From Lepidodermella squamata (lineage: Eukaryota > Animalia > Gastrotricha): a DNA stretch of 64,000 bases. The stretch is from assembly GCA_047495785.1 (NCBI GenBank), contig JBLDXI010000025.1, forward strand, positions 1,302,001-1,366,000. Reading direction: 5' to 3'. Positions 1,718-34,396 of this stretch are shown one piece after another (the first letter of the stretch is position 1; each line of letters opens with the position of its first letter). Below the pieces are notes generated by a model, which was not told the DNA's origin, made no database searches, and saw only the letters and a list, made by a program, of their open reading frames with translations. The position numbers and the translations under genes are program-made.

Positions 1718-2843
1718 TCAGCGCAGTAGACCTAGGCTTCGGCGTTGGCGGAATAGCTTAACCCTAAAATTCCATGAAAAAGTTCAAATTTTCTATAATT
1801 TGACAAAAAGATAAACCTACGATAAATATACGATGATTAGAGTGGCGAGGCCTAATACTGTCCCCAGTATCGCAGCTGCGATTACTGCCCCGTCGTCATG
1901 TGAAGGCGTGATAGTACTTGAAGCAACGTGGTTAGCCGCCGTGGATTCGATCTCAGTAACCTGGTTAGCCGTCGTGGATTCGATCTCGCGGCAGCTTTTC
2001 TCGCCTGTGATCCAGTCTAGTCTATGGTCATTACAGACATCGCCGCAGCACGTGCATATATTAGAATTGTCCTCAGCGTAATAACTCTTTCCGCACAAAT
2101 CAGGCGTGGGCAGGTTTATCGCGCCCCACTCGTAGGCTACGCCTAAGTCCTTCCTAAAAATGACCTTTTTCTACGAAATACAGTGAATGTAATGATTCAC
2201 TCAGCTGTTGAAACCTTACATAGCAAACTTGGTCGTTAGTTAGCGGAATAACGATGACATTTTCTGGAAGAATAGGGCTGTCTGAAGACTACAGGTGAAT
2301 ATAACCACGAAATCAAGTCCTGGAACCAGTACAAATTGAACTCACGTGGTACGACAGGCACGTCTTTTGGATAGCATAGTGCGGCTTATCGTTGCATGAA
2401 TCGTCCAGCGACGCATTATTGCACGTTTCCCCGCAACAGGTACATGTTCGCGTGTACTCGAAACTGAAATTTGACGGATTTAAGCCCCGTTGTACGTTAC
2501 GCTCGAGAGTTTCCTCAATGACATCGCCACATTGGAATTTAGGTATTCCCCGCTCTGCACAGCCCCATTCGAATTCCGATGCTGTAGAATTTTCGCCATC
2601 GATTCTAGTGAATTTCGCTATTTTGCGTTTCTAAAAAGAGCCTTCACTATAAAGTTGTCTATAAACCGCATTTTATACATAGCAGAAGGCGTGTTCTGAG
2701 TTGCAGCTGATTTCGTCTCCGCTAATTGGTAAATCGGAAGTCACACTTGTTGCTTTGTTGCACTTGTTGAGATCGATTTGTATCGCCTCAGCAGAAAGTA
2801 AGAATAACAGCCCTTGCAAGCCTGTAGCAAAGAGCTTTTCCAT
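1718..2843 (-). CDS. Double Ly6/uPAR three-finger-like protein TFD1, type I transmembrane, 5 exons
   Basis: Signal peptide MEKLFATGLQGLLFLLSAEA; two CTCCGxxCN...C domains; Ser/Thr stalk; TM AVIAAAILGTVLGLATLIIVYL; basic tail VKLFRQRRSLGLLR*; GT-AG introns. Confidence 0.8.
1926..1988 (-). repeat. 33-bp coding tandem duplication in the TFD1 stalk (EIESTTANQVT / EIESTAANHVA)
   Basis: Two near-identical ggttagccgycgtggattcgatctc units are visible in the DNA and in the translation. Confidence 0.85.
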
Positions 2844-3098
2844 TTTTGCAGCATGAAATATTTTATAGAAGTGTAGTGACTGATTTTTTAGATAAGGAAA
2901 TGACCACCTGCCAATTACCGATAAGCAAGTTGGGTAATTACATATGCATTAGAGACTTGTGATAATTGTTTTCTTACTTTCATCGTGGACGAGAACGGGG
3001 CAAGCTTGAAGCCTTCATGGTAATGATGTGGGATTTCATAAAATAAGGAATGGCTGTTATTTTATAAAAAAGCAAATTAGTATGGCCAAGTTTAGCTT

Positions 3099-3140
3099 TA
3101 TTCATACTATAATATCAGTATTCATACTATAATATCAGTA
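3099..3140. repeat. Perfect 20-bp tandem duplication overlapping the TFD2 stop codon
   Basis: ttcatactataatatcagta occurs twice in tandem. Confidence 0.85.
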
Positions 3141-4494
3141 ACTACGACCATTTAGCCCACGATTAACCAGTGCTAAAGTCTCGATGCCACCTCGTTTGAT
3201 TACATATAGCCGATAGCTAATAGTAAAAAGTAATCTCGTTAAAGTAATCATGATTAAATAAAAAGTTACCTTAAATATGCTATAATAAGGAGGGCTATGC
3301 CTAGGAAAGCTCCTAGCACTCCTCCAACCACTGCAGCTGTCGAATCACCTCCACTTTCTTCAGTCGTCGTAGTCAACACTTTTGTCGTCGTTGTAACATC
3401 CGGATTAGTTGCAGTTGTTCCAGGCTCTGGCGAAGTTGTAGTTCCTTCCGTGGGAACAATAGGAGTTGTTGGTTCTTCAGTTGATGCTGTTGCTTGCGTG
3501 GAAGCACTTGGAGTTGTTGGCTCGACAGTTGTTGGCTCGACAGTTGTTGTTGTTCCTTCTGTTGAAGTTGTTTGCTCGTCAAAGCATTTCGAGCTGTTAA
3601 CCGTGATCGAATTCAGAATATCTCCGTTGCAGAGAGAGCCGCAGCATGAACACAGTTTACCACTGTAGTTTTCATCAGCCGCATCGTAGCTGAACGGGCA
3701 TAACTGGTTCGGAAGAAGCGATAAACCCGCCCATTCGTATTCAATTACGCCATTGACAACGCGACTAATTTTCTGTATATTCAATTCAATAATAATTGGT
3801 GAAAGGATTGAATTTCGAAACCAACCGTGCATTGCTCAATGTCGGTTACGGGCACTTGAATCGATCTATCTGGATCCAAGTCGGGATTAGTAGATGATCC
3901 AGGCTATGAAGAGAAACGGATACAGGCCCAATAATATACTTCATGATCGATTTTCGTACCCTGTTGTAGTAGGAGTAGCACATTTTCCCGCTAAATTTCG
4001 GCTCTTCATTGCAGCTCGAATCATACTTGGCGTCATTGCACAAGTCTGCGCAGCAAGTGCATGTTTGGGTGTTGGCATAACTGAAAAAATCCACGGCAAC
4101 TCTACCGCCTCGACTCGAGAAAATTATTTCGCCACAATCATTCTGGTAGAAATCCTTCACTGGCCAATTATCACTTGAGCAGTCCCATACATAGTACGTC
4201 GATTGCTTTGTCGAGTTACCGGCGAAAATCTGCGTCTCAACTACCCTAGCTTTCTTTGAGAATTTATTAAAGAAATTCCTTCAAAAATTACATTTTTATG
4301 GAAACTTTTACCAAGCAGAATGCAGACGGGTCATCACAATTCACATTGGTGGCATCAGCAGGTAATGAGCCGTTGTTCTCGTTAACCGCTTTGTAGCATG
4401 TCAAGCCATGAACTGAACAGCCTAAGCATCCAATGAGAAAAATGGTTCTAAAGCTTAACTCGAACCACATCGTGAATTTTTCAGAGTTTACCAT
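3135..4494 (-). CDS. Double three-finger-like protein TFD2, type I transmembrane with mucin-like Thr-rich stalk
   Basis: ORF pieces 4288-4494 (signal, LTCY...FCL), 3846-4160 (CTCCADLCN) and 3266-3832 (CSCCGSLCN, Thr-rich stalk, TM). Last exon reads YRLYVIKRGG...GRSY*. Confidence 0.8.
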
Positions 4495-6510: not shown

Positions 6511-6661
6511 GGAGTGAATTTTAGGTTAGAGCGTTTATAGCCGCACATCAGGATGTATGTTTAATAGCTATTCGTAGATCCTGATGTATGTGGAGTGAAT
6601 TTTATTTTAGAGCGCTTATAGCCGTACACCAGAATGTATGTGTAAAGTTTATTCGTACATT
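6511..6661. repeat. Imperfect tandem duplication of about 80 bp
   Basis: Two copies of ggagtgaattttaNNttagagcgNttatagccgNacaNcag...tattcgta. Confidence 0.7.
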
Positions 6662-7422: not shown

Positions 7423-7565
7423 TCGAGTTTTTTTAATTAAATGAGCACCCATGAATTATAATCACAACTCCAGTTTCCTATGATTCAAATACCGTAACTG
7501 GAAGGTAAACGTGTAACATCTTTTACTACTACTATTAGGATATGTTCATTAAAAATTAACGCAGC

Positions 7566-8669
7566 ATGGGAAATAGAGTATCTAACGCCGTGAAGAAGGC
7601 TGCAAGTTTCATACCTTTTGGTGGAGCGATCGGCGCTGCTGCTGGAGGAGCAGGATCAATAGCTGGGTCAGCAGTGGGAGCAGTAAGTGGGTTTCTCGTT
7701 GGATTATTTGATAGCGTGGAGGCCGACAGTAAACAAATTCCTCAACATGCGTTGGTAAGGCTATTTTTGCGTCCGTGACAATCAATCTCATTATATGAAT
7801 AGAATACCGAAGCTAATAACATGCGAGGAAATCAACGAAATTCCCAAGACTACGATCTAAAAAAGGCAGAAGCTCGTGCGCTCGCTAGAGCAATCCGCCT
7901 GGGAATGAATACGAAAACCGACTTCAACATAGCAGTCGCTGGTCTTTCCGGCGCTGGAAAGTCTGCCTTGGTGAATGCACTCCAAGGCAAAAATGTAGCC
8001 AAAGAAGATGTTGTTGAATGCACTTCCGAACCTACGGCGTACGACCTAGAAATTGGTAAAACCCTGCCTGTTCATTTATGGGATGTTCCTGGAAGTAGTA
8101 CACCCAGTAACCCAGCTGCCGAATACTATCAAGACAAATGTCTGTTCTATATGGATTGCTTGATAATTGTATATCAGAGATCAATTTTGGAGTCTGATGT
8201 CTCATTTGCGCGACAAGCAAGGGAAAACAAACAACAAGTCTGCTTTGTTAGAACCCGGGCGGATCAGGACGCCGATAACATTGCTGATGCAAAATATGAT
8301 TCTCCCGATGGCTACAAAGCGCTCGCAACATCGCAGCGTCGGGAAATTTGTACGGAACTTGGACAAAAAGCCGAGAAGCAATTCCACGATAATATTAGTC
8401 GATTCACAGAACTGGATGGTGTTCAGCATTTTTACGTAAGCAAGAGGAGAATGATGGAAGTAAGGAAAGACAGCTATTTGCTTCCGGCGGTATTTTTTGG
8501 CGAGGAAGAATCTACTGCAAACAAACGATATGAAAGCAATTTCCCGGAAATGGATGAATTGCGGATGCTGAGATGGATCATTGAAAGTGTGAGCGAGACA
8601 CGCAATGTCCGACTGAAGTTGAACAGTGACATCTTAAATAAATTGGGTCGCTGGTTTAAGCTGATTTAA
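7566..8669 (+). CDS. Immunity-related GTPase (IRG/IIGP-like), 2 exons (7566-7754, 7803-8669)
   Basis: NIAVAGLSGAGKSALVNAL (G1), LWDVPG (G3), FVRTRAD (G4), and V(E)CT.EPT.Y typical of the IIGP family. MGNRVS N-terminus. A 48-bp phase-0 GT-AG intron joins the two ORFs in frame. Confidence 0.85.
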
Positions 8670-13676: not shown

Positions 13677-14604
13677 TTCTTCGTAAGTATCTATCACCTA
13701 ACGGAAGCCTAAACTCTAACGGAAAATAGTAGAAAACACAGCATCAGTAGCAGTTGTACTAATTACAAACTTACTCGTTCTACTTCCTCGAACTTTCCTT
13801 CAACCTAATTCCATGAGAAATACGCGCTTACTTTCAGCAAATATTGCATCGACCTCAAATTTTATCGCCGCAAAACCTACCGAAATACGAGTCGCCTTGG
13901 AACTGTGTACATAGGAAATCTGACATAATGGTACGCACTTTTATAATGTTGGTTTCAGATTCGCCACACAAGGAGTGTGTTTCTTTTATCTTTATTGCAA
14001 TTGACGGGAGAATTTAACCTACGCATTCAGCTAAGTATGATTCAGCTTTTATTATTTCTTGAGCGAGCAAGTCTCATTCGCTGCTTCTATCGACGTGGCT
14101 TTTCGAGGCACCAAATGAATCGTATTTTCCGGCTTCTTTTGTGGTATAGCGTAAATCTGGAATTATCTGATTTTTCTGATTGAATCCAGATTGGTTGGCT
14201 AAAAAGCGAATGATGTCCCGTAGCAAAATTATGCACGTTTATAATTAATTATGCAAATGAGTTTGAGAAAAAACAGGAAACAAGAAAAATTTGCCAGCAA
14301 AACGTTCGAGGAAAAAATCTCGTTTCTTGTATTTTTCAAACTCATTTGCATAATTAATTATAAAAGTGCAAAATGTTGCCACGGGGTGCGCTTTCCCATT
14401 TTTCCACGATCAAACTTTTTGACCGATTTTTTTGCGCGTTCGCTACAAATAAAGGTCACAGGTTCAACTAAGTCATCAAATAGGTATTATCAATTTCTCC
14501 AAGTTTGCGCGCCTGATCGTACAAAGCCAAGGTTCGAATCATCATAAATTTATTGTTCTATTATTTATGCATTATATTTTTCATCGGTCATTCATCGACG
14601 AATC

Positions 14605-15862
14605 TCATGCGTCTTCGTCGCTGCTGCTATCGTCGTCTTGAATGATTCTCGCTCGATCGTCTGTTGAATACGGGTCATCGTCGTTGTGCGACGAACTTCG
14701 AGGAATGGCTTTGTACCTAAATTGAGAAAGTCGTACCCGCGATGATAAGAAAATAAGCCATAAGTGAATTTCAACTTACAAGAAATGGGCGATTATGGTA
14801 ACTGCGATTACGAGGATGAGTAGCAGAGATACCGTGATCGATCCGAACACCTCAACGAGCTGATACACCTCGCCATGCTGAGGGCTGGTTGTTGTCGTCG
14901 ACATATTTGGCGATGCAGTTGTGGTATTCCAGTTGGATGTAGCAGTACTCTCGGCAGTTGACGGCATAACAGTCGTTACCGGGGCTGGAGCAGAACAGTT
15001 TGTATTAACGGTGATTCCATCCATACTTCCATTATTGCACTCCCGGTCACAACAAGTACATAGACTAACTGAGGTAGTATTCGTTTTGCTGTAGAAACCG
15101 TCACCGCATTTCCCCTTTCTTTGAGGAATGCTAACAGCAGCCCACTTGTACGAAGCTGAGCGTAGAAACAGCGTAGACATTTTCTAATCAGTAGAAATGT
15201 AAGCGAGTTATTTACAGGTTATAGAATTTCACGTTTCCCTTACAGAGCAAGTTTGTGTTGCAGTGATTGGTACTATTACTGAGTTCCGAGTATCGAACTC
15301 TGGATTTTGGCTCTAATTAAAGAAATAGGGTAGTTTGAAACAGCTCATGGCGGATCGAGTCTTACTTGTAACGCGTTGCATCGAGCAGCGAATACCACAG
15401 GATTTACGCAAGAGTTATCCAACGTGTCATTATTGCAAAGATCTCCACAACATGAACATAAGCTCGTATAGGTATACATCATTCGAGTGGGGTCGATTCT
15501 AGCTCCGGTTGTAAGCTCTATCTTGTCATTGCATTCGTAGAACGACCCATCCATAAGTGGGTCATACATCTTTTCATCGAAGCAATCCCATTGGTATTGC
15601 AGTGTAGCATTGGTCATGGGACCCGGATACTCACCTTCCGCCGTGGTTTGCAGCCCTTTCTAAGAAAAATATTGGATTTTCGCATTAAACCTTATATCAA
15701 ACAAAATCTCACTGTGCAAAATGTGTTGCAGTTAACTTTCTGTGCATTGCTCGGCAGGGAAGAGTTGTCATTACTTACAGCTTGATAGCACTCAAGAGCA
15801 TTCGAAGCCCTGAATAAAACCAGGAGAGAAAGTGACACGAAAAAACCACCAGTCAAGGTCAT
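14605..15862 (-). CDS. Double three-finger-like protein TFD3, type I transmembrane with acidic Tyr-containing tail
   Basis: Signal + LECY...FCT; CSCCGDLCN; CTCCDRECN; Thr-rich stalk; TM; last exon YKAIPRSSSHNDDDPYSTDDRARIIQDDDSSSDEDA*. Confidence 0.8.
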
Positions 15863-16030: not shown

Positions 16031-16972
16031 TCAAATTAATATCAGTATTAATGTTACTATTACAACTACAAAAGTTATCATGCTCTGGCGAAAACTCGAT
16101 TCAGCCCGATTAGGGCCACTGATAGTCGAAGTTATGTTCTTATTTGCCTTGAGGAAGCATTCATTCGTTCCAGCCGTGATGTTATCCATTCTTTGGTCGT
16201 TGCATTCGTCTCCGCAGCAGGTACACCGTTTTTCAGTTGTAGCACCGCCTTTATAAGCCATGCTCCAACAACTTGACGTAGTTGCTCCCCATTTGTACTC
16301 AGCCCCACTCGAGGTATTCCTAGCAATTTTCTGCAAAAAGATGATATCAAAAGGCTTGAAAAGAGGCTTTCAATTTACGTAGCAGTTTTGTCCATTTGTG
16401 ATCGGAGCGATGATGGCTTTCCTAGAATTCAACTTTGGACTCGAGTCCTGTAACATAATTAGTCAAATTCACTGACGAAACTGGGTCAACTTACAACATG
16501 AATCTTGCATTTCTTGGTGTATTTCGGCGGATTAGTGCATTCAGAATCGTCCATGTAATCATCGTTGCATAGATGCCCGCAGCATGTGCAGATCAAAAGA
16601 TGGTCGTAAGTCTTAGAGTCAATGTTCCGAACCGATGTGGTTTCAAAGGTGTCGCCACACTTGATGTTATTTATTACGGGATCGTTCTCCATGCAACCCC
16701 AGATGTACCAAGTCTCAGAAACAGTTCCAGGTTTGTTTCTATCCATTTTCAAGACGGTCATTTTCTGTTACGGAATTCAAGGTTCAGAGCAAAACTTCGA
16801 ATTATCATGTTACCGTGCAGAACACATCGTCGCCGTTGCAGAATTTAGTCACAGGGGGAATAGGTAGCGCATTTCTTTGACTTTGAGCTGAATAACATTG
16901 AACAGAATCAGCTGATGCACGTTGAAATACAGCGATAACAAAGCACGGAAACAATAGACGGTACATTCTCAT
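16031..16972 (-). CDS. Double three-finger-like protein TFD4, probable GPI anchor, 4 exons
   Basis: MRMYRLLFPCFVIAVFQRASA signal; CTCCGHLCN; CTCCGDECN; hydrophobic C-terminus with no cytoplasmic tail. Confidence 0.8.
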
Positions 16973-17342: not shown

Positions 17343-18280
17343 TTAATTCAATAAGTTGATATTAGCTAAAAACATGGCTAGTAATGAGGCTGATAAGTGA
17401 CCAACACCGGAATCAACGCAGCCAGTTTTCTTTTCCTCTGCGACTGGATTCACGCAATCAGTCGAATCGCCATTGACATAGTCCATTCGTTCATCGTTGC
17501 AATCTTCGCCACAACACGTGCATCTCTTCTCGAGATACTCGCCTTTCACAGCACTATAAGTGCTGCCACAAGGAGCCGAAGAAGCTCCCCATACAAATTC
17601 AACGTCAGACCGATTGCTTTTCACGATTTTCTGTAAAGAGATTAAAGGAGTTCAAGCTTAGAACTGGTGGTGCGACCACTTACATAGCACTCCTGATCTG
17701 CGGTTATCGGGACAGAGATGGATTTTTGCTGGTTCAATTTTTGAGTTTTGTCCTAAATTTCAGATTTTTTAGTGTGAAATCCTTTAATTTTTGATAATTC
17801 GCCTTACAACATGGAGCTTGCACATCTTCGTGTAGATTGGAGTTCTGCTGCACGCGTCGTCCATTTGATAATCATTACATAGATTCCCACAACAGCTGCA
17901 AATGGTTGTGTACTCGTAAGTCGAGCTTTTCGGATTTTTGTCCGATGTTGTCTCCAAAACATCGCCGCAATGCATGTTTCCCAGAAGGGCTCGATTCTCC
18001 ACGCAGCTCCAAATGTAACGAGTCTCAACAGCCCGTCCGGGTTTATTTCGGCTCAATTTCATAACTCTCGATTTCTAAAAGTAAACTTAGTTCGCAATGA
18101 TTGTTAAGTAAATTTCTTACTCACCGTACATACGACATCTTCGCCAACACAATTTTTAGTTTGGGTGTTCAGGGGGAAAGTTGGCTGGGAGCTTTGCGTG
18201 TAGTAACAATTCACTTCATCCGCCGAACATCTTTGCCACACGGAAATGACGAAACATAGCGCTACTTGTAACTGCACCAT
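17343..18280 (-). CDS. Double three-finger-like protein TFD5, probable GPI anchor
   Basis: MVQLQVALCFVISVWQRCSA signal; CSCCGNLCN; CTCCGEDCN; C-terminal DSG...LSASLLAMFLANINLLN. Confidence 0.8.
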
Positions 18281-18716: not shown

Positions 18717-19690
18717 TCAAATATGGTTCAATGCTATGGAAGCTCCCAGTAAAATCAATTTCGTAACGATTGGCTTTAGGGCGGTGTTAGAATAGGCCAT
18801 TGGCGTTGTTGGCAGAACCTCCTTTGATCGAAACCGGCATTTGAAGTCTCTGGCCGTCGCATTGTCTAAGATTTGGTCGTTGCAGTCGCTGCCGCAGCAC
18901 GTACATGACTCCATGCGCTCGTCATCAGCAAATTGAACATGGTTCGTATCGCAATCAGCCGGTTTCGATGACGCGCCCCAGAAGTAAGTAGTCAGCCCTT
19001 TTCGCGTCTCGAGCATTTTCTACAATAGATCATTTATTAAACCATGGTTAAATCGGGGAAAGATCTACTTACGTAACAGTGTTGAGATTCAGTGATTGGA
19101 GCTGAGATAGCTAAGGGACTGAGTGCTGGTTCTGAATCCTGAAGAAATCGACAGTAGGGAAATTTCGAATGTGATAGCAGTAAAATCCTTACCACGTAGA
19201 CTTTGCATTTCTTGGTGTAAACTGGTCTTTTAAGGCATTCGTTCAGCATATTTCTCCCATTGCATAGATCTCCGCAGCAAGAACACAGAGTTGAGTGCTC
19301 GTAAACTGTTGGGTAGAAGCTCTCGGTCGTAGTCGACTCGAAACTTTCGCCACAATCGCGAATTCTATCGTCGTCTTCCATGCATTCCCAGGTGTAAGTT
19401 TCCGAGATAACAACCTCTGGAGCCTCTGCGGCTAGTTTCATTTGTCTCATAAGCTGATTAATAGAATGCTCTGTGTTATTGAACAATTTTGGCGACATTT
19501 TAAGAATTACCACACAGAAGACCTTTGAGCCTAGTGTTCTGCACTTTTTAGGCTCTGCATCTAACGGGAAATGTGGAGTCAACGTTTGAGCTGAGAAGCA
19601 TTCAACACTCCCGTATGCCGCAACATCCGAAAATTTATCGATAATGAGAGAGATAACTAATAGAGTTGAGAAGTTGAACTTCTCGCGCAT
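18717..19690 (-). CDS. Double three-finger-like protein TFD6, probable GPI anchor
   Basis: ORFs 19037-19729 (reading through short in-frame introns) and 18717-19016; CSCCGDLCN and CTCCGSDCN; hydrophobic end. Confidence 0.8.
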
Positions 19691-19897: not shown

Positions 19898-21033
19898 TCA
19901 ATTAGAATTTATTGTGGCTGAGCCGCCTTCGTAGTGGACTTTGTCCATAATGGCAGAGTCCGCGACTTGCTTTTTCAGTTTAAGCACATAGACGCTGAAA
20001 TTTTAGAAATTATTGATCAGCTCAAGTACAATGGTAATGACTTACATGGCCAAGACAAGTAGAATCAATGTGACGAGCAGAAGAGAACCTAAAACTGATC
20101 CGAGTATGATATGAAGGTCACCTTGAGGATTTGGGGTTGTCGCCACTGGTTGAACACCGCAACCAGTTTCGTTTAGGTTTATACCGTCCAAAACATGCCC
20201 ATTACATTCATTGCCGCAGCAAGTAACAACGCAGCCGTAGTCACCATTCAAAACCGGGTCATCATCAATAGGTTTCGATTCAAATGTATCGCCGCACTTG
20301 CTTCCGGCTGGCAAACTCACGCTACCCCATTCGTAAGAAGGATTGCCGTGAATAAGCCGAGACGCTTTCTAATTAATGATTCGATTTAGCTCTGAACTAT
20401 ATGAAAAAGTCTATTAAACTCACGAAGCAAACTTCTCGCGCAGTTGAAGGAGCAGAAATAGCTTTTTCCTTCTCTAAAACAGGCTCTAATTGCTGGGTAA
20501 AACTGCAATAGGATTAGAAGATCTTGTTTGGATTAAAAATTACAGTATGCATGAAGCATCTTTTGTCGAATTCAGGTTCCTCATTACAGGCATCATTGAG
20601 AATGCCGTCGTTGCAGTTATCGCCACAGCATGTGCATGCCGCTGTGTAAGATGACGATTTGCCGGAATCTTGCGACCAGATCCCATTTGACCGCTCGATG
20701 CGAACTCCACATTGAGCAAAAGAACCATCAGGAAGCGGCCATATGTTCTCCCAGCAGCCCCACAAATACTTGATCGAGCTCGTCAGGTCTTCCTTAACTT
20801 CTACCGTCTTGCTCTTCTACAATTGATCAGAATTTCGTGAAACTTGACAGATATTAGGGTTAGATTACCATGCAAAATGCGTTCGGTGCGACGCATTCGT
20901 AGCTTCCTGCATCAGCGGGAAAATGCATTGTTTCATTACTCGATCTGACATGATAACACTTTGTTTCGGCTCGAACTAAAGGCCAAACTAGGCTAGCTAG
21001 AAGGAAAATTGGAACAAATGAAGTGGGAACCAT
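19898..21033 (-). CDS. Double three-finger-like protein TFD7, type I transmembrane
   Basis: MVPTSFVPIFLLASLVWPLVRA signal; CTCCGDNCN; second domain CVVTCCGNECN; TM IILGSVLGSLLLVTLILLVLA; tail VYVLKLKKQVADSAIMDKVHYEGGSATINSN*. Confidence 0.8.
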
Positions 21034-21142
21034 GTTTTGCCAAGCAATGTATATCAGATCAATTTCATTAGTGTAAGAATAGATAACGCTTATCGTATAT
21101 AGACACAAAAACTATCATGAAACTGGGATAGTACATTCAATT

Positions 21143-22184
21143 TTATTTATCTAATAAAAAGCGAAACAAAAGGATTAAAGCCAAGCACAATGTTGATGGC
21201 TTCCGAAGCGGCGCGCTGTTAGACATTGGCATAGATACCTCAAATTCGTCATTCCCTTTAAACACAGATTTCGCCTCCGTGTTGACAGCATTGGATACAT
21301 TGACAACTCGTTTGAGAATTGGCCCAAGTCTTAGGTGAGAGGCCCCTGAAATTGAGCAGTCTGTGTTGTTCGAAAGAATCGCATCCAACTGCTCATTGCA
21401 GTCACTTTCACAGCATGAGCATTTTAATTTCGTCTTGACACCATCTGAGCTGAATTCGTTGTCAAAACATGAACCTGTATCGGCTCCCCAGATATACTTA
21501 TCCCTGTAGCCATCAAAAATCGATTCTTTCTGCGATAAGACCGAGAAATGAAATATCCAAGATCAAAGTGAAGTACTTACGAAACACCTCTGATTTTCTG
21601 TTATTGGAGCTGAAACAGCGGTTTCATTGTTGATCGCAGGATCTTCGCTCTGAAAATACATTCTTAATTAATTTGAAGCCGGCAAATTATGCTTTTACAA
21701 TATCAAGCTTGCATGACTTGGTGAAAACAGGGTCATCGTTGCATTCAGCATCCATATCGCCGCTATTGCACATGGATCCGCAGCAAGTACAGGTTGTTAC
21801 GTGCTCGAAATTTGTCCAAGCCTTTCCTATATCCTCTTCAACCTCCGATACTTGAGATTTCTCGAATTTCGTGCCGCATTCCACAGATGGTTTAGCTTCT
21901 GAACAGCCCCAGCGATAGACAACTTCGAGGACTTCTTCAGGACTATCGCGGCTAAATACCATGGTTCTTGTTTTCTAGAAATCGAAAATTAACATCGATA
22001 ATTAATAATTTCGATATTTTCTTACGGCGCAGAAGGATTGGTCAGTTTTGCAAATAATAGGCTCAGATTCGAGAGGCAAATCGCCAGAACGACTCGAGGC
22101 CGCGTAACACTGGACATTTCCAGCAGAAGCGACACATGGGTTCAAGAGAGTAAAGAATAAAGCGATAACTACGCACTGATTCAT
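21143..22184 (-). CDS. Double three-finger-like protein TFD8, probable GPI anchor
   Basis: MNQCVVIALFFTLLNPCVASA signal; CTCCGSMCN; CSCCESDCN; C-terminal SNSAP...TLCLALILLFRFLLDK. Confidence 0.8.
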
Positions 22185-22432: not shown

Positions 22433-23376
22433 TTACCATCTAAAAGATAATAAGAGCATGCTGTAGACTATTCCTGCCCAGTCATTGGCAAAACATGAGG
22501 CGCTATTCTGCAGTAAAAAAGTTGGTTCGTGGCAATAAATGTCCTCAGCAGTGATATTATCCATTCTCGCGTCGTTACAGTCATTCGTGCAGCATGAACA
22601 GTACTTCTCCACGAAAATCGGCTGGTCCACTTGCTTGTAGGCTGTTGTTCCGCAACCGTAGGGCGTTACGTTAGAAGAACCACCCCATGTGAACTCACGA
22701 CGATTTCCATACCGAGCAGATAATTTCTAGAATAAACTTAGCATTGGTATCACGATAATTAAGAATTTAATCCTTACAAAACAATGCTCCTTTTCCGTAA
22801 CTGGGGCGAAAATTATTGTTGACTCGTTAATGTATTGATCCGGGCCCTGTAAATCCATGTTTAGGAATAATATAGATTTTTAGAGCAAAAGGCTAACCGT
22901 GGAGAGAATGCAGCTTTTAGTGAAAACAGGATCATCGTTACATTGATCGTCGAGCGAGTCGTCGTTACACATTTCGCCGCAGCATGAGCAGAAGGAAATA
23001 TGGCGATATGAGTAGTTGCTTTCCTTTGAAATGCGAGTTTCTTCGACCCCCTCGCCGCATTTGAGTTGATACCGCTCGAAACTGCCCTCCAAACAACCCC
23101 ACTGATAGACGATCAGCGTTCGATTTTCGGGGTCATCGTTCAGGTACTTCATGACCCTCGCTTTCTAAAGCAGAAATTAGAAAAGCTGAGAAAAAATTAG
23201 GTTGAACTTACCACGCAAACGGCAAATTCTGACTTGCATTCGCTGATTTTACTAGCATCAGGTAATTTTTCCGAGCTTCCTTTGAAGTGGAAACATTTTA
23301 TTTTCTCATATCCAGAGACAAATATGAAAAAGCCAAGCCCAACGAGTATTAGAGCTGAAAATTTGCAGGCAATCAT
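22433..23376 (-). CDS. Double three-finger-like protein TFD9, probable GPI anchor
   Basis: MIACKFSALILVGLGFFIFVSG signal; CSCCGEMCN; CSCCTNDCN; NSAS...hydrophobic end. Confidence 0.8.
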
Positions 23377-23509: not shown

Positions 23510-24449
23510 TCACGAAAAATAGGCCACCAGTATTGGAATAGCAATGAACGCATTTTCATGCGTATTAGTCCTTGCATTGTTCATCGAACAGCGCTTGCTT
23601 TTTATGTCCACAAAATCCATCGCCGGGCCATTGCATTCATTTCCGCAACACGGGCAGTAATTTCCATGATGCGAAGTTTTGTTACCGGTTTTAACGATAC
23701 CTTGATTACATTTAAGCAAATTTAAAGAAGTTGCCGACCATTCGTACTCGACGCGACCTCCCATAAACCGAGCTGTTTTCTATTAAAAAATGTTAAATGT
23801 TGTAGTTTGGACTAAATATTATGTAAAAACCTACCAAACAGTGTTGATTTGGCAGGACTTTTGCCGTCATGGCTGTTGAAGTGTTGAGAACTGGCTCAGT
23901 GCTCTTAAAAGTCATCAATGTTACTGGAATCAAAATAAGAAGCTCAAAACTCACTGAATGGAAGTAGCACTTCTTATGTGACGTGAATTTCGGCGATTCG
24001 TTACACTTTTTGTCCATGTTAGCTCCGTTGCAGATACTGCCGCAGCACGTGCAAATCGAACGATGATTGAGAACATTTTCATGAACTGAAGACGTAAGCT
24101 CCAAGTTATCGCCGCATTGAATGTGGGCTAGCTCTAGGGCAAATGGAAGGCCAGTGCTGATACAACCCCAGTGAAAGTGAAATTTAACTGCAAGTATTTC
24201 GTTCGCATCACCTAGGAGTATCTCTGAAACCCTCATTTTCTATGGAAAAAAGCTGAATTAAAGAATGTAACTTACTAACCCAGCACTTACGTAACAAACA
24301 TCGTGCGGGGATAAGCATTCGACTGCTTCGGCATTTTTCCCAATGGCGCTTACATATTTGTGCGCATCCTTGGAAGAAAAACACTTCAGCCCACATGATA
24401 ATGGAAAGATTCCTGCTAAAATCACGTAAATTTCAACAAACTGTCTCAT
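23510..24449 (-). CDS. Double three-finger-like protein TFD10, probable GPI anchor
   Basis: MRQFVEIYVILAGIFPLSCG signal; CTCCGSICN; CPCCGNECN; NNA...AFIAIPILVAYFS end. Confidence 0.8.
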
Positions 24450-24646: not shown

Positions 24647-25692
24647 TCAATAGACTAAATAAAACAGCGCAATGCCAATTATGACTTCATAAGTTGCAGG
24701 GTTGTGTAGAGCTGCTCTTGAAATTTTCGGGCAGACATCGCTGTGAGTGGAGAATATATCAAGACGGTCATCATTACAGTCATTCCCGCAGCAGGAACAT
24801 GTTTTTTCTCTGAACGAGTGCGTCAAGAGTTTCGAAGACGTTCCGCATTTCTCTGTTGCGATAGTTGATGCGCCCCATTTGTAGATTCCTCGATCGTCTT
24901 GCTCGACGTAAGATTTCTGTGAAGTATATTGTTAAATCAGATTGTTTGCAGTAGCAAAGTATCAAAATTACGTAGCACTGTTCGTATTCAGTAACTGGTG
25001 CCGTTACCGCCAAAGTTTGATCCAATTGAGCATTCTCATCCTGGTAAAAATGAGTTACAAGTTACAATAAAGGTGTGTGGAAAGGGGCCTTCGGTTAGCA
25101 TAGCTTTCAAAGGACAATTGAGTCTTTATTATGGATTTCCTTAGATGAAAGCTGAAAGTTGAATTTCGGAGCTGTAATGTGTTAAAATCCTTATTAAATT
25201 CAATGCAGTTGCCACTTACCAAATGTATCTTGCATTTCTTTGTGAATTTCGGCGAATCATTGCACATTTCATCCATTTTCTTGTTATTGCACCACTCGCC
25301 GCAGCAGGTGCAGATCGATGTATGCTCGTAAGTTGAAGCACCCTGGGCCGCAAATCCCGTCATTTCTATGCGATCCCCGCAGGTAAAGCTGGTATGCTTA
25401 TCGCCGCTCACCTCATCTTCGATACAGCGCCAGTTGTAGTGAATCGATTCAATCTCTTGTGCGTTTTGCCGGGAAATTTCCATGACCCGAACTTTCTGAA
25501 ACAATTTTATGATAATAAATAAGTATATTATTTTAATAGGAAACTAACCCCGCAAACTGAATGTCTATTAAGGCAGGCCGCTTTCTTAGATTCTCGAGGT
25601 AAAATCCCATTTGTCGACTGGGCTTGGAAGCACTGAGCAGAAATACCCTGGACAAAACTAACCAAAAATAATGTCGGAACAATGCAATACAT
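24647..25692 (-). CDS. Double three-finger-like protein TFD11, probable GPI anchor
   Basis: Exon 1 (not in the ORF track) MYCIVPTLFLVSFVQGISAQCF...VCG; CTCCGEWCN; last exon KSYVEQ...CSCCGNDCN...VIIGIALFYLVY*. Confidence 0.78.
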
Positions 25693-25882: not shown

Positions 25883-26907
25883 TTAAACTATGAGAGCGGC
25901 AAAGAGTAGTAGCCAGGCTGTGCTGAGAAGAGAATTGATTCGCATAGCTGAATTAATGCAAAATCGACTTCGAACATCGATCTTGTTCATCGCATGTCCG
26001 TTGCATTCACTGCCGCAGCATGTGCAAAAGTTGCCGTAACTTCCATCCGTCGATCTCGAGCTGCTGTTTGTCACGACTCCTTCGTCGCAGAGAAGATTAC
26101 CATGAAGACTGCTGGCAAACCACTCGTATTCAACCAACGCGCCAGCCTCTGTCATGTACTTTCGCGAAGATTTCTGTGAAATACCAAGTTTGATGCATAT
26201 AAGGTACAAATCATAGATAGTTTACCACACAATGCTGCTTAGCAGTGACTGGAACTTTGGCTGCCGTTTTCTCGTTCAATTTAGCCTTGTTCGTCTGAAA
26301 AATGAGGAATATTCAAAATAAAATGGCTATAGGAATGATTCGTCATGAATTTTCGTATAGAAGGGATAGCTGTAGAAATGAATTCGGCGATTTCATACCG
26401 AGTCAACGTAGCATTTCATCGTAGTATTGAAATCCGGATGTTCCTCGCACTCGCCATCCAAATCTTCATCGTTACACAAATGTCCACAGCAAGTGCAAAT
26501 CGACTTGTGGTAATAGATGTTGAGCTTCTTCGGCGCTTTCGCTGTTTTCTCAATCGTATTGCCGCATTTGATAAACGGAGTCGTCGGACCAAGGGGGAGA
26601 CAGCCCCAGGTGAAGTAAATCTTCGACGTCAAAACGTGACCAGAAGCTGTTAGAATTAGCTCTGCAGTTCTCGTTTTCTGTAAAAATATATTTTTTCCTA
26701 AAGTCTAACGATTTCCCTGCAACTTACGTAGCAAATCGCATGGGGAGTTTTGCATGATGTATTCTTGGCATCGACCGGAAAGTCGCCCTCAACTTTTGGC
26801 CATTTATTCGAGTAACAGTGAACGTCCTCAGCCGCGAAACTCGTTTCTGTTACATGTAATAACGCCAGTAATAACAAGAAAATTCTTGCTCTCGGTTTTT
26901 CAGCCAT
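25883..26907 (-). CDS. Double three-finger-like protein TFD12, probable GPI anchor
   Basis: MAEKPRARIFLLLLALLHVTETSFA signal; CTCCGHLCN; CTCCGSECN; NSA...LLSTAWLLLFAALIV end. Closest in motifs to TFD10. Confidence 0.8.
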
Positions 26908-27186: not shown

Positions 27187-28149
27187 TTAACAACAAGGAA
27201 TTATTAGGCGAAAAGTGGCAATGAAGGGTAGCCCAATTGTGATTATTGAATGAATGAATGTACTGGTAGCTGCGCCAGCAAGAGACGAGGATATCCTACA
27301 AAAATGATCACTCGCTGTTATTCCGTCCATTGTTGAGTCGTTACACTCATTGCCGCAGCATGTGCAAGTCTTCTCGACGAAAGTGTTGACCTGAGAATAG
27401 GACATTTCGCTACAATTTCTTGCGGCAATTGATGAGGAGCCCCATTTATATACAACAGATCCTCTATCACTTCGAACTTTTTTCTAAAATAAAGAAATTA
27501 GGTTTAGCTCAAAAGTCAGCCCCAAATCGAAAGTCTTACATAGCAATGTTCATTAGCCGTAGCGGGAGCTGAAATTGCTTTCGTTAGGTTTAAAACAGGA
27601 TCATAGGCCTTAATTGAGAGAATATTTATTTCTGAAATTAGTAAACGAATTTTAGACTCACGGAGTAAATTTTGCATCTTTTCGTGAATTCGAGGTATCC
27701 AATACATTGGCTATCCATATCCTCACCATTGCACATATCTCCGCAGCAAGAACAGATTGAAATATGGTCGTAACTTTCAGCTTCGGTTGTTGTAATTGAG
27801 GTCTTCTCAACTTGCTCGCCGCAGTGGAAAACTGGCGCATTCATCTCCCAGCAGGTCCATCTGTACCAGACCTCAATCGACAAACCCGGGTCGCTTCGGT
27901 CCATTACTAAAGTCCGGACTTTCTAAAAAGAGTATCCATAGATTTGAGATTTCTAAATGAACAAGTTCTTACAGCACAAACTGCATATTGGGTTGCGCAA
28001 TATTTCTCCTCGGCATCATAAGGCAGCAGACCGTCACCATTATTTTGAGCAAAGTAGCAGCGAAGTCTGCAAGTAACGCCACGTAGCAACTGAAAAGCGA
28101 TGAATGAAACGGTGATTAAAACAAAATTTCTCGCAAACATCTGATGCAT
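27187..28149 (-). CDS. Double three-finger-like protein TFD13, probable GPI anchor
   Basis: MHQMFARNFVLITVSFIAFQLLRGVTC signal; CSCCGDMCN; CTCCGNECN; small-residue stretch followed by a hydrophobic end. Confidence 0.8.
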
Positions 28150-28475: not shown

Positions 28476-30747
28476 TCAAGAGAGGAGCGATTGTAGAATA
28501 ATAGGTAGGAAAACGGCAAAAAATACCGTGGAATGAGCGAAAATTAACAGTCCGAACGACCAAACAGCGTTAACCCATACTTGCTGATCAAGAGATATTG
28601 ATAGACCAATCGTCGCAAGGAAAATGAAAGCCGCATTCATAGTGCCGTATTTGAGCGCAATGAGATCATGCCTCAATTCTTGCGACACTTGGGCGCTTCT
28701 CGTTAGCAGAACTCGCACTAAAATGCTGAGGATTGCCGCGAAATTTATCGCACCGATGGAGATGGTCCAGTAAAATTGGCTGTTTGATCGGCATTGGCTG
28801 GTTTTTACGGCGTAGTATGAGTCTAAAACCTCGTCAAAAGACTCAGAACTTTGTTTAGTCTCGTTTACAGGCCTGTCAGCCATCATCCAAACAAAACAGA
28901 TCCCAAACGTCAATACTAGCACAGAAAAATTGATAAATCGATTGCTTGACACGTGTGATCTTATGGGGACGACTGTCTTTGAAGATTTTCTTCTAACCTT
29001 TAACATAGCCGATGATACTCTGGATAGGAACATGCCGGTTGCCGAGCTGATCATCGTGCTTTTGAAGACTCTTAATGCTGAAATGGTTAGAGATATTCCA
29101 ATCGAAACTAAGATGAATATGAATGGGCAGGTTACGTCGGAATTTCGAATTTGAAACAAAACTGAGGCTACATCTGTAACTAAGGTACCTGGCAAAAGAA
29201 TAACTAACAATTTCTTCTCCTTACTTCGTGGCATCTTAAATGTCGATTTGTAGATCAAAACACCGGCTATTACCGATAATTTACCGAGTGTAACCAAACC
29301 AATAATGATCCAGAACAAAATCGTCGAAGTTTCTGTGGAGTCAATAATCAACACTATGGACAGGTCTTTCGGGGGCCTCCCATTCCGAGTGGTCCAAATT
29401 ATGTCAGATAGCTGAACCAATTTGTGTTTCGAAGGGTCCGTAGAATCCGTCGGGTCTTTAAGTGGATACCAAGTCATAACTAGGTCTTTCTGCGTGCCGT
29501 TAATCCATTGGTTGATGTATACTATCTTACTGTCCCGTTCAAGGCGTTCTGAAAAATCCATGTTGTCGAAAAGCGACTCCATTTTGACGATCGAGGTACT
29601 GTGATTCGTGACTTTCATCACGACATCTGGGTGACGTGAAAAATCAGCCAATGTGAGGTTTGAGGTGTTGCGTAGTAGCTTTTCGGCAGTATCAAGTGCA
29701 AGCAAGGCATGCTGCATTGCATCGTGGCAGTTAAATCTCACCGAGTACTCCTGGCCCTGGTCATTATTTGTCATTACATTCAGCCTTCTATCGAATTCCT
29801 CAATGCTGTAACCGAGAGATATAGCTTTTGACCTGTTTGAAGACTCGCTAATCTCGCCTATCCTGAACGATATGTCCAGTTGTTGGATAAAGTCATTCCT
29901 TGAGCAATTACGTGGCAGGTCCATGGTCATGGCGTCGATGAGAGGTGCTATGAACAGAAAAACGTATTGTGAACCTCTAATCCCGGCAAAATAGGCTTCG
30001 CATAGAAATTTAGCGATGGATGGAGGGTCTTGAATAGTTACGATGAGAATTCTAACTTTGGACATCTTGATAGGGGCCATGAATTCTGAATTGAAATCAT
30101 CAGAAGCCCCGTTGAATAGTACGTCAAGTCCAGCTTTTTCCGCAGCAACTGAAACAAATGGTCCATAAGGAGGTAGTCGTGTTGAGATGACCAAACCGAT
30201 CTATACGGATAAATAAACGTAGCGAAAATTAGTTTTGGTGAAAAATACTCACCTGGCGCCATTTCCCAATCTCCTTCGCGAAGAGCATGAATTCGATAAC
30301 CATCAACTCTGCCGGGCGTGCGACTCGATATAAATTGGGGAAAGCGAAGCGATTCGCAGTGAAAAGTGCCCCGCCACATCGCGTTGAGATTTGAACATAG
30401 TTTAGACCACGTGCTATCGCAGCAATATTCTGGCAAGCGTTCATCGGCCCAACAATAATGGGCGCCTTCCTATTTGCCGTATTTCCGTCAAACGCTATCA
30501 AATTGCGAACCCCTGCAATCGTTTGTGCCCCCTCGTCAGCGTACTGAGCTGACAAAATATAGTCAGGTAGAATGAATGGGTTGGCATTGACCGCATCCAC
30601 AGCGATTTGCATCCCTGACGAACAGATCTTGCCATTTAAGGGGCTTGCGCCAGTTCGAGGAACAAGAGCAAGAATTGTCAAATTAAGCTTTAAGCTGGTA
30701 GCGGAATTCGTAGCAAAGAGGATACACAGAATTAACCTTAGACACAT
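28476..30747 (-). CDS. Class C (GABA-B-like) GPCR: Venus-flytrap ectodomain plus 7TM; intron 30201-30252
   Basis: Signal peptide; GMQIAVDAVNANPFILPDY.L, IIVGP, FPNLYRV.P, FLCEAY..G.RGSQYVF, W...G.PPKD; seven hydrophobic segments with C-P (TM3) and QCRS (ECL2); ends shortly after FLP. Confidence 0.85.
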
Positions 30748-31420: not shown

Positions 31421-32626
31421 TTATTGAAGGGGATTCATCATCTCAACCCTGTCGTCATTACCACCCGCCAACTGTCGCCGCAAGCGAAGAGCATAGAGTC
31501 TGAAACCATAAATATGAGATTTTAGAGAAGTTTCGGACATATACAACACACTTACCCCACGACGCCAAGTGAGCACAAGGCTACGAATAATAAAGAACCA
31601 AGAACTGCTCCTATGATGATTCCCAATTCATCACTAGGAGTCTCATTGGCATGAGTAGTTGTTTTTTCGGGATTTTCGGTGGGCGGGAGTGTTGTGTGCT
31701 CATCAGGGCTTTCAGAAGTTTGCGTAACAGGGCAATTCTGGTCGTCCAAAGTCATCGAGTCGTATTCATTTCCATTGCAACGATCTCCGCAACATGTGCA
31801 AACTTTTTCAATCATCGAAGCTTGATCTTTATACGCTGAAACTCCGCATTGGGGCGCGTTTATGCAGCCCCATGTGTAGCTATCTCCAACTTCAGGAATA
31901 CGCTGTCCAATTTTCTAGGTCAAAAAACATAGGATACTCTATCAAAGGTGCATAATGCATAACAGTTTCAAACCATGCACGCCTGAGATGAGGAACACTG
32001 AACCTGAGCTGCGTTAGCAGGAAGATTAGGGCTAATAGGAGTTCCGTCCTAGTATAAAGTCAGCATAAAAACCTTCAAGTTTTAAATAGCAAGGACTAAC
32101 ATCGGAATAGACAGATCCCGCATAGCAAGTTTTGTCAAAAACTGGCGGCTGGTTGCAGTCTTCATCCATCGTACTGTTATTACATTGTTCCCCGCAGCAA
32201 GTACACGCTCTGGAGTAGTAAACTGTAACCGGTCCGTCTGGCATAGCAGAACCTTGCGTGATTTCAAGGTGATCGCCGCACTGAACGTTGAGCAAAGCGT
32301 CGTAGGCTGGGCCGATTGGAGCACAGGTCCATTCCCATTTGACTCCATAACTTTCAACGCCGTTAATAATTTCGCTGTATCTCGTATAGATTTTCTGAAA
32401 AAATGTTAGTTTCAATTGTCTATTAGAATTCCTATTAGAGGCTCACCATGCACAAATCGTTCTCTGACTGACAGTCCTCGAGGGGAGCATCTTGCGGTAG
32501 TGAATGCCGACCAGTTTCATTCAGCGCAACTTCGTCTTGATATGAGTAGCATTTCTTGCCTGAAATCTGCTGAAAAGACAGTGCGATTACAACTGAAAAA
32601 CAAAACGCCAGCTCGAATTGGACCAT
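31421..32626 (-). CDS. Double three-finger-like protein TFD14, type I transmembrane
   Basis: MVQFELAFCFSVVIALSFQQISG signal; CTCCGEQCN; CTCCGDRCN; TM; tail LYALRLRRQLAGGNDDRVEMMNPLQ*. Confidence 0.8.
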
Positions 32627-33141
32627 TTTGAATCAATTATTAACTGAAATACGTTTTTTTATAGATTCTACATCAAATGAGTACTTTGCATTGCTGTGTC
32701 TTATCTGTCTCCTTCGTGCGTTATCTTTCGTTTTCTTGTTTCTTTTCTTGGGTAAGCTGATAGATATTACTAGTTGCGGATAACTCATCTGGCATGGTCG
32801 CGGCGTCGAATGTAGCCACTTATTTAGGCCTCGGCTTCTGGGTTTATCTCAAGAAACGATCTATCAGCGTGGAGGTTGACGCGTCAACATTTGAAGGCAG
32901 CCCCAGCAGGCTTAAAGCGAAGATTTCTGGGCTGAGGTAACGTGAACTGTCCTCTTCTGGATATTATGGCTCCTTAATCTTTGATAAAAATAAAATAAAT
33001 AAATGGTAGCTTATATTGCAACGATGCCCCAAATAATGCGGTGGGTGATGCAGTAGTCTTTTGCGGACAATCCATAGTCTCCATAGTTAGGCAATAACTC
33101 ATTTCTTGCCATCTTTATTAAAAACATTAGGCCAAATACAT

Positions 33142-34396
33142 TTATGTTGAAATGATGCTGCTTCGCGGTGATTTGCTTGCTGTTAATTGAGCTTTTAGTC
33201 GCAGTATGAGAAACCTAAGAAAAAATGCCGGAATTAGAATACATGGCTGAGTGAAAATTTGCTTACAAAAGGGCAAGCACAATGGCGAAGAGTAACAGAA
33301 ACAGTATCGCAAAAATGCTGCTTAGAACAATGATTACATCCTGTTTCACTGGCGGGCTGACGCTGAGGTATTCGTTTGTTGAATATGGCATAGATGATGC
33401 CTGGAAACTTGTCGCAGTAGTTTCCATTACTTGCAAAGTCGAATCCGACGAATTCTGAAGGATGAATGCTGAACTCGGTAGTGTCGTAGATGCAGGCCTA
33501 TCCATCTCGCAATAGCTATCATTCGCTGCGATTTGATCGAAACTCGGCCCATTGCATAAATCCCCACAGCAGGTGCAAACCTTTTCTGAATCCTCGCCGT
33601 ATTGTTGGTAGAGTTTCATATTACAAGTATCGGCTTGACCAATGACAGATTTAGGCTTGGTTATGCAGCCCCACTGGTAATTCGAAGATTGATTGGAGTA
33701 TGATACATATTTCTAAAAGCACTACAATTTTTAGCAGCCTAGTTGAAGTTGCGTGTTTCATACCAAACAAGTTTGCTTCTCTGTGCAAGGAATAACCACA
33801 GCAGTTGACGGTAAGGCAGAGCTATTTAAGGACTGTGAAGGCACTTTTAACCATAGAATATAACTAAGGGGAAATCTCACGTGATCATTTGATGAGTAGC
33901 ATTTGTGACTGAATACAGGCTCTTCATTGCATTTCTCGTCCATATCCTTCGCGCTGTTGCAAAGATCACCGCAGCATGTGCAGGCCCGTGTGTAGTAGAA
34001 CACGTCATGATCGGGAGAAATTTTAGAGCCTATACCTGTCTCCAGGCTGTCACCGCACTGGAAGCCATCAGACATAAGATTTCCATTCCTAGCGCATCCC
34101 CACTGGAAATAGGTACCATAAACTTTAGGCCCGCTTGCATCGCCAATCACAACTTTTGCATAGACTTTCTGTTTGAGAAAAATAGTAGGTCAATATCGAA
34201 AACTGGTTCGTCTGTTTACCATGCACATGGTTTCATTTTGACCGCAAGTTTTTTTTACAGCATTTTGAGGTAGGCGATTTGATTGTTTCGCGTTTGCTAT
34301 GAAAGATTCGGAGAAGGAGTAGCACTGAAGAGCGTGAGCTGGTGTTACGGAAAAGTAGGTCAAGGCTATAGTAAAGCTGACACTAAATAGGGACAT
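33142..34396 (-). CDS. Double three-finger-like protein TFD15, type I transmembrane
   Basis: MSLFSVSFTIALTYFSVTPAHA signal; CTCCGDLCN twice; Ser/Thr stalk; TM; tail FLILRLKAQLTASKSPRSSIIST*. Confidence 0.8.

Follow-up and report, generated by a model that had tools for sequence, protein, structure and literature searches.

A divergent family of two-domain proteins, probably of the LU superfamily, encoded by an apparently old tandem gene array in the gastrotrich Lepidodermella squamata

The array and its interpretation

A stretch of 64,000 nucleotides from the gastrotrich Lepidodermella squamata (GenBank assembly GCA_047495785.1, contig JBLDXI010000025.1, positions 1,302,001 to 1,366,000 of the forward strand; called the window below, and numbered from its first letter) carries an array of 15 genes. 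All of them are found on the minus strand, and their products have a signal peptide, two consecutive cysteine-rich domains (D1 and D2), and a membrane anchor. These genes are best understood as a new, divergent family within the known superfamily of three-finger or Ly6/uPAR (LU) domain proteins. The array arose by an old tandem expansion, and the family is restricted to its lineage. We put the probability of this interpretation at about 0.8.

The array is not a new kind of system. LU proteins are found in all animal phyla, with tens to more than 100 genes per invertebrate genome (PMC13719153). Tandem clusters, lineage-specific expansion, loss and gain of disulfides, anchoring by glycosylphosphatidylinositol (GPI) or by a transmembrane (TM) helix, and GPI-linked proteins with two LU domains are all hallmarks of the superfamily (PMC6600238). 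Lineage-specific expansion in tandem, apotypic bonds, and GPI proteins with two LU domains are already on record for this superfamily (PMC6600238, PMC13719153), and the first-pass annotation of the window went too far in presenting the array as an undescribed system. What is new here is a family that lies below the detection of hidden Markov models (HMMs), with enlarged domains, a CxCC block and an additional Cys after the CN pair, loss of the 4-6 Cys pair in D2, and phase-0 exons.

Gene models and transcripts

A six-frame scan of the window for the motif C.CC...CN gives 29 matches, all on the minus strand and 0 on the plus strand, while about 0.005 are expected per shuffled window. A 30th copy is the variant C-VVT-CC-GNECN in D2 of gene 7, where the first Cys is shifted. 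The copies pair up, and the 15 pairs correspond to 15 co-oriented genes on the minus strand. The open frame at each motif begins at a phase-0 acceptor, (y)AG|AAA. At the first motif of each pair, the exon stops about 31 codons further on, at a GTAAGT-like donor. The start exon encodes the hydrophobic N-terminus and three Cys (the signal peptide and the first third of D1), exon 2 terminates within D2, and the third exon is short (22-26 codons) and ends in C-x.

All 15 frames are open. The genes have four coding exons each and encode proteins of 252-345 codons, and their introns are GT-AG, in phase 0, and 47-60 nt long, with the exceptions of 104 nt in gene 12 and 179 nt in gene 11. Every protein has hydrophobic stretches at both ends, an N-terminal segment and a C-terminal tail. 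The genes are spaced by 110-640 bp, save for two gaps (4.5-14.7 kb and 28.4-30.8 kb), which are filled by unrelated genes. The outermost start is at 34396, and the 3' limit is the stop codon at 1817-1819. Both agree with the coordinates given before, in which the 3' limit was put at 1718. Gene models and six-frame scan agree on what had been described from the first reading, 15 co-oriented genes whose products each carry a signal peptide and a membrane anchor and have a pair of Cys-rich domains. No promoter motif is common to the 15 upstream stretches of 150 nt, where only A/T-rich or TATA-like words are seen, and these in a few of the genes.

Transcripts are available from a public cDNA run of 2015 (X1), and the same genes are found unspliced in a DNA run of 2024 (X2). 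Contigs from X1 are spliced at minus-strand GT..AG borders, exactly at the predicted introns, in genes 4, 5, 7, and 8. The mRNA of gene 7 extends from about 21052 to 19843 and is complete in one 899-nt cDNA contig, with joints at 20492/20544, 20368/20424, and 19994/20046. X1 contigs end at 21052 and 19843, both ends of this transcript, in adapter sequence that we take to be the SMART template-switch and primer sequence. The donor of the fourth intron of gene 7 (19995-20045) overlaps the apparent stop codon. Therefore, the protein runs on into a 32-residue, basic-rich cytoplasmic tail, and the product of gene 7 is proven to be a type I TM form. Plausible candidate terminal introns are also seen in the sequences of genes 1, 2, 14, and 15: gene 1 has a candidate fifth 3' exon, gene 2 a candidate 53-nt intron whose donor overlaps the stop codon, and gene 15 a candidate intron of 52 nt.

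Domain anatomy and membrane anchors

One shared Cys signature had been proposed for both domains, C(Y/F)..C..C..W.C..CG..CxCCGxxCN..D..C. D1 fits this pattern and has 10 Cys in 15 of 15 genes, with a length of 102-115 amino acids (aa) from first to last Cys. D2 (86-100 aa) departs from it, since 13 of the 15 genes have only 8 Cys there, without the second Cys (b) and the Cys that follows the invariant Trp (d). Genes 14 and 15 keep 10 Cys in D2. The tandem arrangement of two domains therefore stands, with signatures that differ between them. Because Cys b and Cys d are either both present or both absent in each of the 30 window domains, they are probably bonded to each other.

CN follows the last core Cys in 30 of 30 domains, and Cys, W, and N residues are invariant across the paralogues. 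The last Cys of the domain lies 8-9 residues past CN in D1 and 13-14 residues past it in D2. Only 10-12 residues separate the last Cys of D1 from the first Cys of D2. Every domain has an even number of Cys, including the CxCC block and the one extra Cys after CN, which suggests an additional disulfide between a CxCC Cys and the post-CN Cys. As for which Cys of CxCC is the apotypic one, the register of the profile alignment given below points to the fourth position. Other directions are indicated by the variant CYCK in D1 of an environmental relative (P0011), which is also without Cys e, and by the shifted first Cys in D2 of gene 7. The signature may be called novel for the CxCC block and the post-CN Cys, which no Pfam LU model matches; the superfamily to which it is assigned is already known.

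A hydrophobic tail is found in 15 of 15 proteins, in agreement with the membrane anchor first noted on each of them, and the anchors appear to be of two kinds. Genes 1, 2, 3, 7, 14, and 15 encode hydrophobic runs of 21-24 residues, most of them behind stalks rich in Ser, Thr, and Pro (S/T/P), and are classified by sequence as TM-type. The other nine genes (4-6 and 8-13) have terminal hydrophobic runs of 7-17 residues, as GPI signals have. They are classified as GPI-like, and their products are probably attached through GPI. The proteins end 0-32 residues past the membrane segment and have no kinase.

Membership in the LU superfamily

The plesiotypic LU set consists of ten Cys bonded 1-5, 2-3, 4-6, 7-8, and 9-10, and an Asn directly after the last of them is a hallmark of the domain (PMC6600238). 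When the family profile (A4) is compared by hhalign with 11 LU/QVR proteins of canonical type from this genome, it aligns at a probability of 51% and E 1.5e-4 over 77 collinear columns, Cys-to-Cys. In this alignment, Cys a of the family pairs with plesiotypic Cys 1, b with 4, c with 5, d with 6, and e with 7, and CxCCGxxCN lines up with the QVR-type CxCxxxxCN. The plesiotypic set is incomplete in the family. No domain has Cys 2 or Cys 3, 13 of 15 D2 domains also lack Cys 4 and 6, and two apotypic Cys have been gained. Loss of the 4-6 bond is not among the usual deletions in the LU review (PMC6600238). Because the superfamily tolerates changes of this sort, the departure from the ten-Cys set is compatible with membership.

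Predicted structures support a three-finger or LU fold. The 10-Cys domain of an environmental relative (P0005:23-150) was modelled with AlphaFold 2 from an alignment that included all exon-2 and exon-4 peptides of the window. The model is all-beta, with a predicted local distance difference test score (pLDDT) of 87 and a predicted template modelling score (pTM) of 0.81. Compared with 48,161 PDB chains by VIA-align, it matches TEX101 (Z 10.3), CD177 (Z 10.2), and GPIHBP1 (Z 7.5), and each of the 34 best rows is an LU protein, a three-finger toxin, or a TGF-beta-family receptor ectodomain. The Foldseek list is almost entirely LU, and a shape search of the ESM Atlas gives TM-scores of 0.5-0.62 to UPAR_LY6, QVR, and Activin_recp clusters. 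A second model is that of an intronless paralogue of 315 aa in the same genome (L011:1260-2204). Its D1 has pLDDT >90, and its best match is uPAR with Z 11.3, over 176 residues across both domains. Structure prediction and a Foldseek comparison with LU folds had been suggested as a check on the array. Both give three-finger matches, and the description of two LU domains per protein is supported by the match of the L011 paralogue to uPAR across both domains.

Several observations weigh against this assignment. Pfam has no match at E<=10 for the exon peptides or the full-length paralogues, and a six-frame genome search with PF00021, PF17064, and PF01064 finds none at the loci of the array family at E<=1 (the other models of Pfam clan CL0117 were covered by protein scans only). 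No PDB sequence is matched by a single sequence, or by the family profile at E<=10. The hhalign probability is just 51%, Foldseek E-values are weak (best 3e-3), and D2 in the L011 model is of low confidence (pLDDT 50-90). The two models are of one relative's domain and one same-genome paralogue, with window peptides in the alignment, and neither is encoded in the window. In addition, the extra disulfide is predicted from Cys counts, and GPI anchoring from tail length.

The domains are also larger than the LU norm of 60-90 aa. In a typical LU gene, one exon encodes the signal peptide and each LU domain is spread over two exons, with phase-1 introns on its flanks (PMC6600238). The array genes do not match this structure, as their introns are all in phase 0 and their exon borders do not bracket the domains.

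Canonical LU genes exist elsewhere in the genome. UPAR_LY6 has 32 weak-to-moderate matches, QVR 39, and Activin_recp 5, all at loci other than those of the array family. A tandem array of about 20 small, single-LU genes of QVR type (CxCxxxxCN) at G000:C6:314000-396000 (L038-L040) is a separate, canonical expansion.

Distribution of the family

A profile of exon 2 gives 42 matches in the 121-Mb genome, which come down to about 35 two-domain genes after inspection of the loci. A 16th two-domain member with a TM-type tail is found about 4.5 kb before the start of the window (L025, G000:C25:1294000-1302000, minus strand, motifs at 2971 and 3368). Therefore, the array extends past the window. Elsewhere the family forms small clusters, on C45, on C26, and at 2.3 Mb on C25, and is also found as singletons. 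Three apparently intact, intronless paralogues are found on C32 (L011:1260-2204, L012:1315-2172, and L013:1134-1994). They are about 85% identical to one another and may be retrogene-like copies. Compared with the window genes, their domain types are swapped, with 8 Cys in D1 and 10 in D2. The loci L014 (C42) and L031 (C36) hold one fused or decayed copy, which is part of a 500-aa open frame and has CxCC changed to FTCC, and one fragment. Two three-gene arrays of the family, L028 (G000:C26:583500-590500) and L029 (G000:C25:2297500-2304500), are nearly identical, as would result from segmental duplication in recent times or from a haplotype that was left uncollapsed.

Outside this genome, 13 relatives at E<=1e-3 are found among 1.84 billion representative proteins. 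All of them are unnamed open reading frames (ORFs) from metagenomes, metatranscriptomes, or run assemblies, and the contig of one relative also carries a tandem mini-array. The family is found in none of the annotated proteomes of the searched collections, and a word-indexed protein search with the read-through ORF of gene 6 gives no match. With these 13 unnamed ORFs as its only relatives among the representative proteins, the family is lineage-specific, as the first-pass annotation had supposed.

Proposed role

Each gene is proposed to encode a protein of the secretory pathway that has two enlarged LU domains in a row and would be displayed on the outside of the plasma membrane. The products of genes 4-6 and 8-13 would be held there by a GPI-type signal and those of genes 1-3, 7, 14, and 15 by a TM helix, mostly behind an S/T/P-rich stalk. 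Within each domain, the first five Cys would represent plesiotypic Cys 1, 4, 5, 6, and 7, with the 2-3 bond absent throughout and the 4-6 bond absent in most D2 domains. The CxCC...CN block would supply plesiotypic Cys 8, 9, and 10 and one extra Cys. The extra Cys would bond the post-CN Cys and so fasten the C-terminal linker to the last strand. The examples of uPAR, C4.4A, TEX101, CD177, and Ly6/Lynx suggest by analogy that the fingers and the concave sheet may bind extracellular or membrane proteins, and each long-diverged paralogue may have its own partner. Binding of a partner at the cell surface through fingers and sheet is the most likely function that this analogy suggests.

A more specific version of the same interpretation is that these proteins are cis-acting accessory subunits that tune channels or receptors, as Lynx1, Lypd6, and Drosophila Quiver do. 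The LU fold and membrane tethering are consistent with it. So is the supply of possible partners in the genome, with more than 166 scored Neur_chan_LBD matches of 2530 first-look candidates, 1266 first-look candidates for class C receptors, and one class C gene inside the array itself. However, with such gene numbers a receptor next to the array is expected by chance, the receptor beside a relative's LU gene is not orthologous to the one in the window, and the canonical QVR-type genes of the genome could fill the role. We regard this version as tentative and rather unlikely. Further still along this line, two-LU subunits could be paired one-to-one with the channel or class C receptor repertoires in a combinatorial co-receptor code for chemosensation or neuromodulation. 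This we consider unlikely. If it were true, D1 and D2 would form a new, rigid binding unit, made so by the apotypic disulfide of the linker and by the missing 4-6 bond.

Age and selection

The paralogues of the window are 22-44% identical overall. A tree built from the D1 cores places the nine GPI-type genes in one group (support 90/84), which also takes in a single dispersed gene and, on a long branch, gene 1. The TM-type genes split off deep in the tree, where dispersed paralogues are found as well. The terminal branches have lengths of about 1-2 changes per site. These lengths point to an old array without recent duplicates in the window.

The first-pass annotation preferred a rapidly diversifying repertoire. 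If it served self/non-self, immune, or gamete recognition, selection on it would be diversifying or balancing. The number of paralogues, with fingers that vary while the scaffold stays fixed, would suit such a repertoire, and an IIGP-like GTPase gene is found in one gap of the array. Divergent haplotypes would suit it as well. Over 19331-19592, which spans the first intron of gene 6 and reaches into exons 1 and 2, two X2 contigs of about equal depth are found, one identical to the window and the other with 18 differences in 262 nt (6.9%). The 5' half of gene 7 differs by 2.8% between individuals.

Polymorphism, which had been suggested as a check, argues against rapid diversification. Among the 40 best-supported differences between the reference and two runs (of 81 in all), 30 are coding, and of these 23 are synonymous and 7 non-synonymous, with pN/pS roughly 0.1. 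One site (19897) that was first counted as coding sits just past the true stop codon of gene 7. The excess of synonymous differences indicates purifying selection. Between paralogues, protein identity of 22-44% means that synonymous sites are saturated for dN/dS. The age of the paralogues and the intact state of 15 of 15 genes, with no turnover into pseudogenes, also speak against a recognition repertoire, and the preference of the first-pass annotation now appears improbable.

It is very unlikely that the LU likeness is convergent, with some other small, disulfide-rich beta fold behind it and AlphaFold models that mislead. The lack of HMM-level similarity to Pfam LU families or PDB sequences and a domain that exceeds the 60-90 aa norm could be read in this way. 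However, two independent models match almost only the LU superfamily over the whole domain, CN follows the last core Cys in 30 of 30 domains, and the hhalign alignment is collinear with Cys on Cys. Secreted toxins or antimicrobial three-finger peptides are hardly credible, since, although snake toxins use this fold, every gene here has a hydrophobic anchor (with a TM helix and cytoplasmic tail proven for gene 7) and the two-domain size of 250-345 aa is unlike that of toxins.

Coordinates of the array genes

All coordinates are on the minus strand, with exons given in the order of transcription. Gene 1 (1817..2843; exons 2843-2679, 2630-2346, 2288-2220, and 2170-1817) is TM-type by its hydrophobic tail of 24 residues. 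Gene 2 (3266..4470; exons 4470-4312, 4253-3960, 3903-3826, and 3772-3266), with a long S/T/P stalk, and gene 3 (14776..15862; exons 15862-15713, 15659-15366, 15312-15244, and 15183-14776) are also TM-type.

Three genes with GPI-like tails follow. Gene 4 is at 16031..16966 (exons 16966-16814, 16764-16495, 16447-16379, and 16330-16031), with cDNA joints at 16764/16814 and 16330/16379. Gene 5 is at 17343..18280 (exons 18280-18125, 18074-17808, 17752-17684, and 17630-17343), with cDNA joints at 18074/18125 and 17630/17684. Gene 6 is at 18717..19690 (exons 19690-19511, 19453-19193, 19138-19073, and 19019-18717); cDNA contigs lie over its exons, and its exon-2 acceptor is the least certain boundary of the gene models. 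Gene 7, the TM form, occupies 19898..21033 (exons 21033-20869, 20816-20544, 20492-20424, 20368-20046, and 19994-19898).

From gene 8 to gene 13 the tails are again GPI-like. Gene 8 (21143..22184; exons 22184-22026, 21974-21699, 21649-21581, and 21529-21143) has cDNA joints at 21649/21699 and 21529/21581. It is followed by gene 9 (22433..23376; exons 23376-23212, 23164-22898, 22846-22778, and 22726-22433) and gene 10 (23510..24449; exons 24449-24291, 24239-23955, 23903-23835, and 23779-23510). Gene 11 (24647..25692; exons 25692-25549, 25495-25220, 25040-24972, and 24916-24647) and gene 12 (25883..26907; exons 26907-26728, 26677-26399, 26294-26226, and 26173-25883) have their long intron (179 and 104 nt) as intron 2. 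Gene 13 is at 27187..28140 (exons 28140-27973, 27922-27662, 27608-27540, and 27483-27187). The last two genes, TM-type and with 10 Cys in D2, are gene 14 (31552..32626; exons 32626-32447, 32394-32101, 32048-31974, and 31914-31552) and gene 15 (33263..34396; exons 34396-34220, 34168-33881, 33832-33764, and 33712-33263).

Neighbouring genes and other observations

Between genes 2 and 3 are an ORF for an IIGP/IRG-like GTPase (7821-8669, plus strand; Pfam IIGP, E 3e-19), a multi-exon gene with a signal peptide and sushi/CCP-like Cys-rich repeats (9624-11475, minus strand), and a single-exon gene for a divergent actin-like protein of 424 aa, at most about 55% identical to database actins (12423-13697, minus strand). 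Between gene 1 and the start of the window, two minus-strand ORFs (128-682 and 1030-1443) encode small proteins that are hydrophobic at the N-terminus and are part of a neighbouring array of small secreted Cys proteins. On the other side, a minus-strand gene at 35380-36842 encodes a protein with a TM or signal segment, a part rich in Thr and Ser, and a large luminal portion that looks conserved, and has only a weak Pfam match to New_glue.

A gene for a class C G protein-coupled receptor (ANF_receptor and 7tm_3; 28476-30747, minus strand) is found between genes 13 and 14. Class C receptors are massively expanded in this genome, where a related query gives 1266 first-look candidates. Conserved linkage with such a receptor was considered, because the LU gene of the relative P0011 is followed closely by an ANF_receptor gene, an order also seen with gene 14 in the window. 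It was rejected as chance, as the two receptors have no significant similarity and the genome has more than 1000 candidate receptor loci. The repertoire of pentameric ligand-gated channels is also very large, and many of these channels are encoded in long single open frames. Innexin, connexin, and COX1 have no match in the assembly.

Significance

Few extracellular binding scaffolds of animals are as versatile as the LU domain. The array family illustrates how far this scaffold may drift while the fold, by prediction, is kept, with enlarged domains, altered exon structure, two core disulfides absent in most D2 domains, and one new disulfide probably gained. The family is also a natural test of which disulfides the three-finger fold needs. 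LU censuses based on the Pfam clan, such as that of PMC13719153, may miss the roughly 35 genes of this genome. If so, the published counts of invertebrate LU genes are lower bounds.

Comparison with known three-finger proteins

The nearest counterparts are uPAR, C4.4A, TEX101, CD177, and Haldisin, which likewise have LU domains in succession between a signal peptide and a membrane anchor, and whose genes exist in tandem-duplicated clusters. Zebrafish chromosome 21 has a cluster of seven GPI-anchored two-LU proteins (PMC6600238). The uPAR group also provides the best structural matches (uPAR Z 11.3, TEX101 Z 10.3, and CD177 Z 10.2). Compared with this group, the array family has no detectable sequence similarity and larger domains. 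It is without the 2-3 pair, has the extra Cys of CxCC and the post-CN Cys, and has lost the 4-6 pair in most D2 domains. Its introns are in phase 0 with borders that do not bracket the domains, and six of its members are by sequence TM- rather than GPI-anchored.

Quiver/Sleepless (QVR, PF17064) and other protostome Ly6 proteins are GPI-anchored LU proteins whose C-terminal CxC....CN resembles the CxCCGxxCN of the array family, and their genes also form tandem arrays. QVR proteins consist of just one domain, about 70-100 aa long, in which the N-terminal CxxC is retained, whereas the array family has two domains. The QVR model matches 39 places in the genome and 0 loci of the array family.

The ectodomains of TGF-beta, activin, and BMP receptors (Activin_recp, ecTbetaR2) share the three-finger fold, apotypic disulfides, and a Cys cluster before CN (Z 5-6.7). 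These receptors are fused to a kinase, while the array family has none and the Pfam model is silent at its loci. Snake three-finger toxins have the same core fold, also without the 2-3 disulfide (Z about 5). The toxins are secreted, single-domain proteins of 60-75 aa, in contrast to the array proteins, which by their sequences are anchored, have two domains, and are 250-345 aa long.

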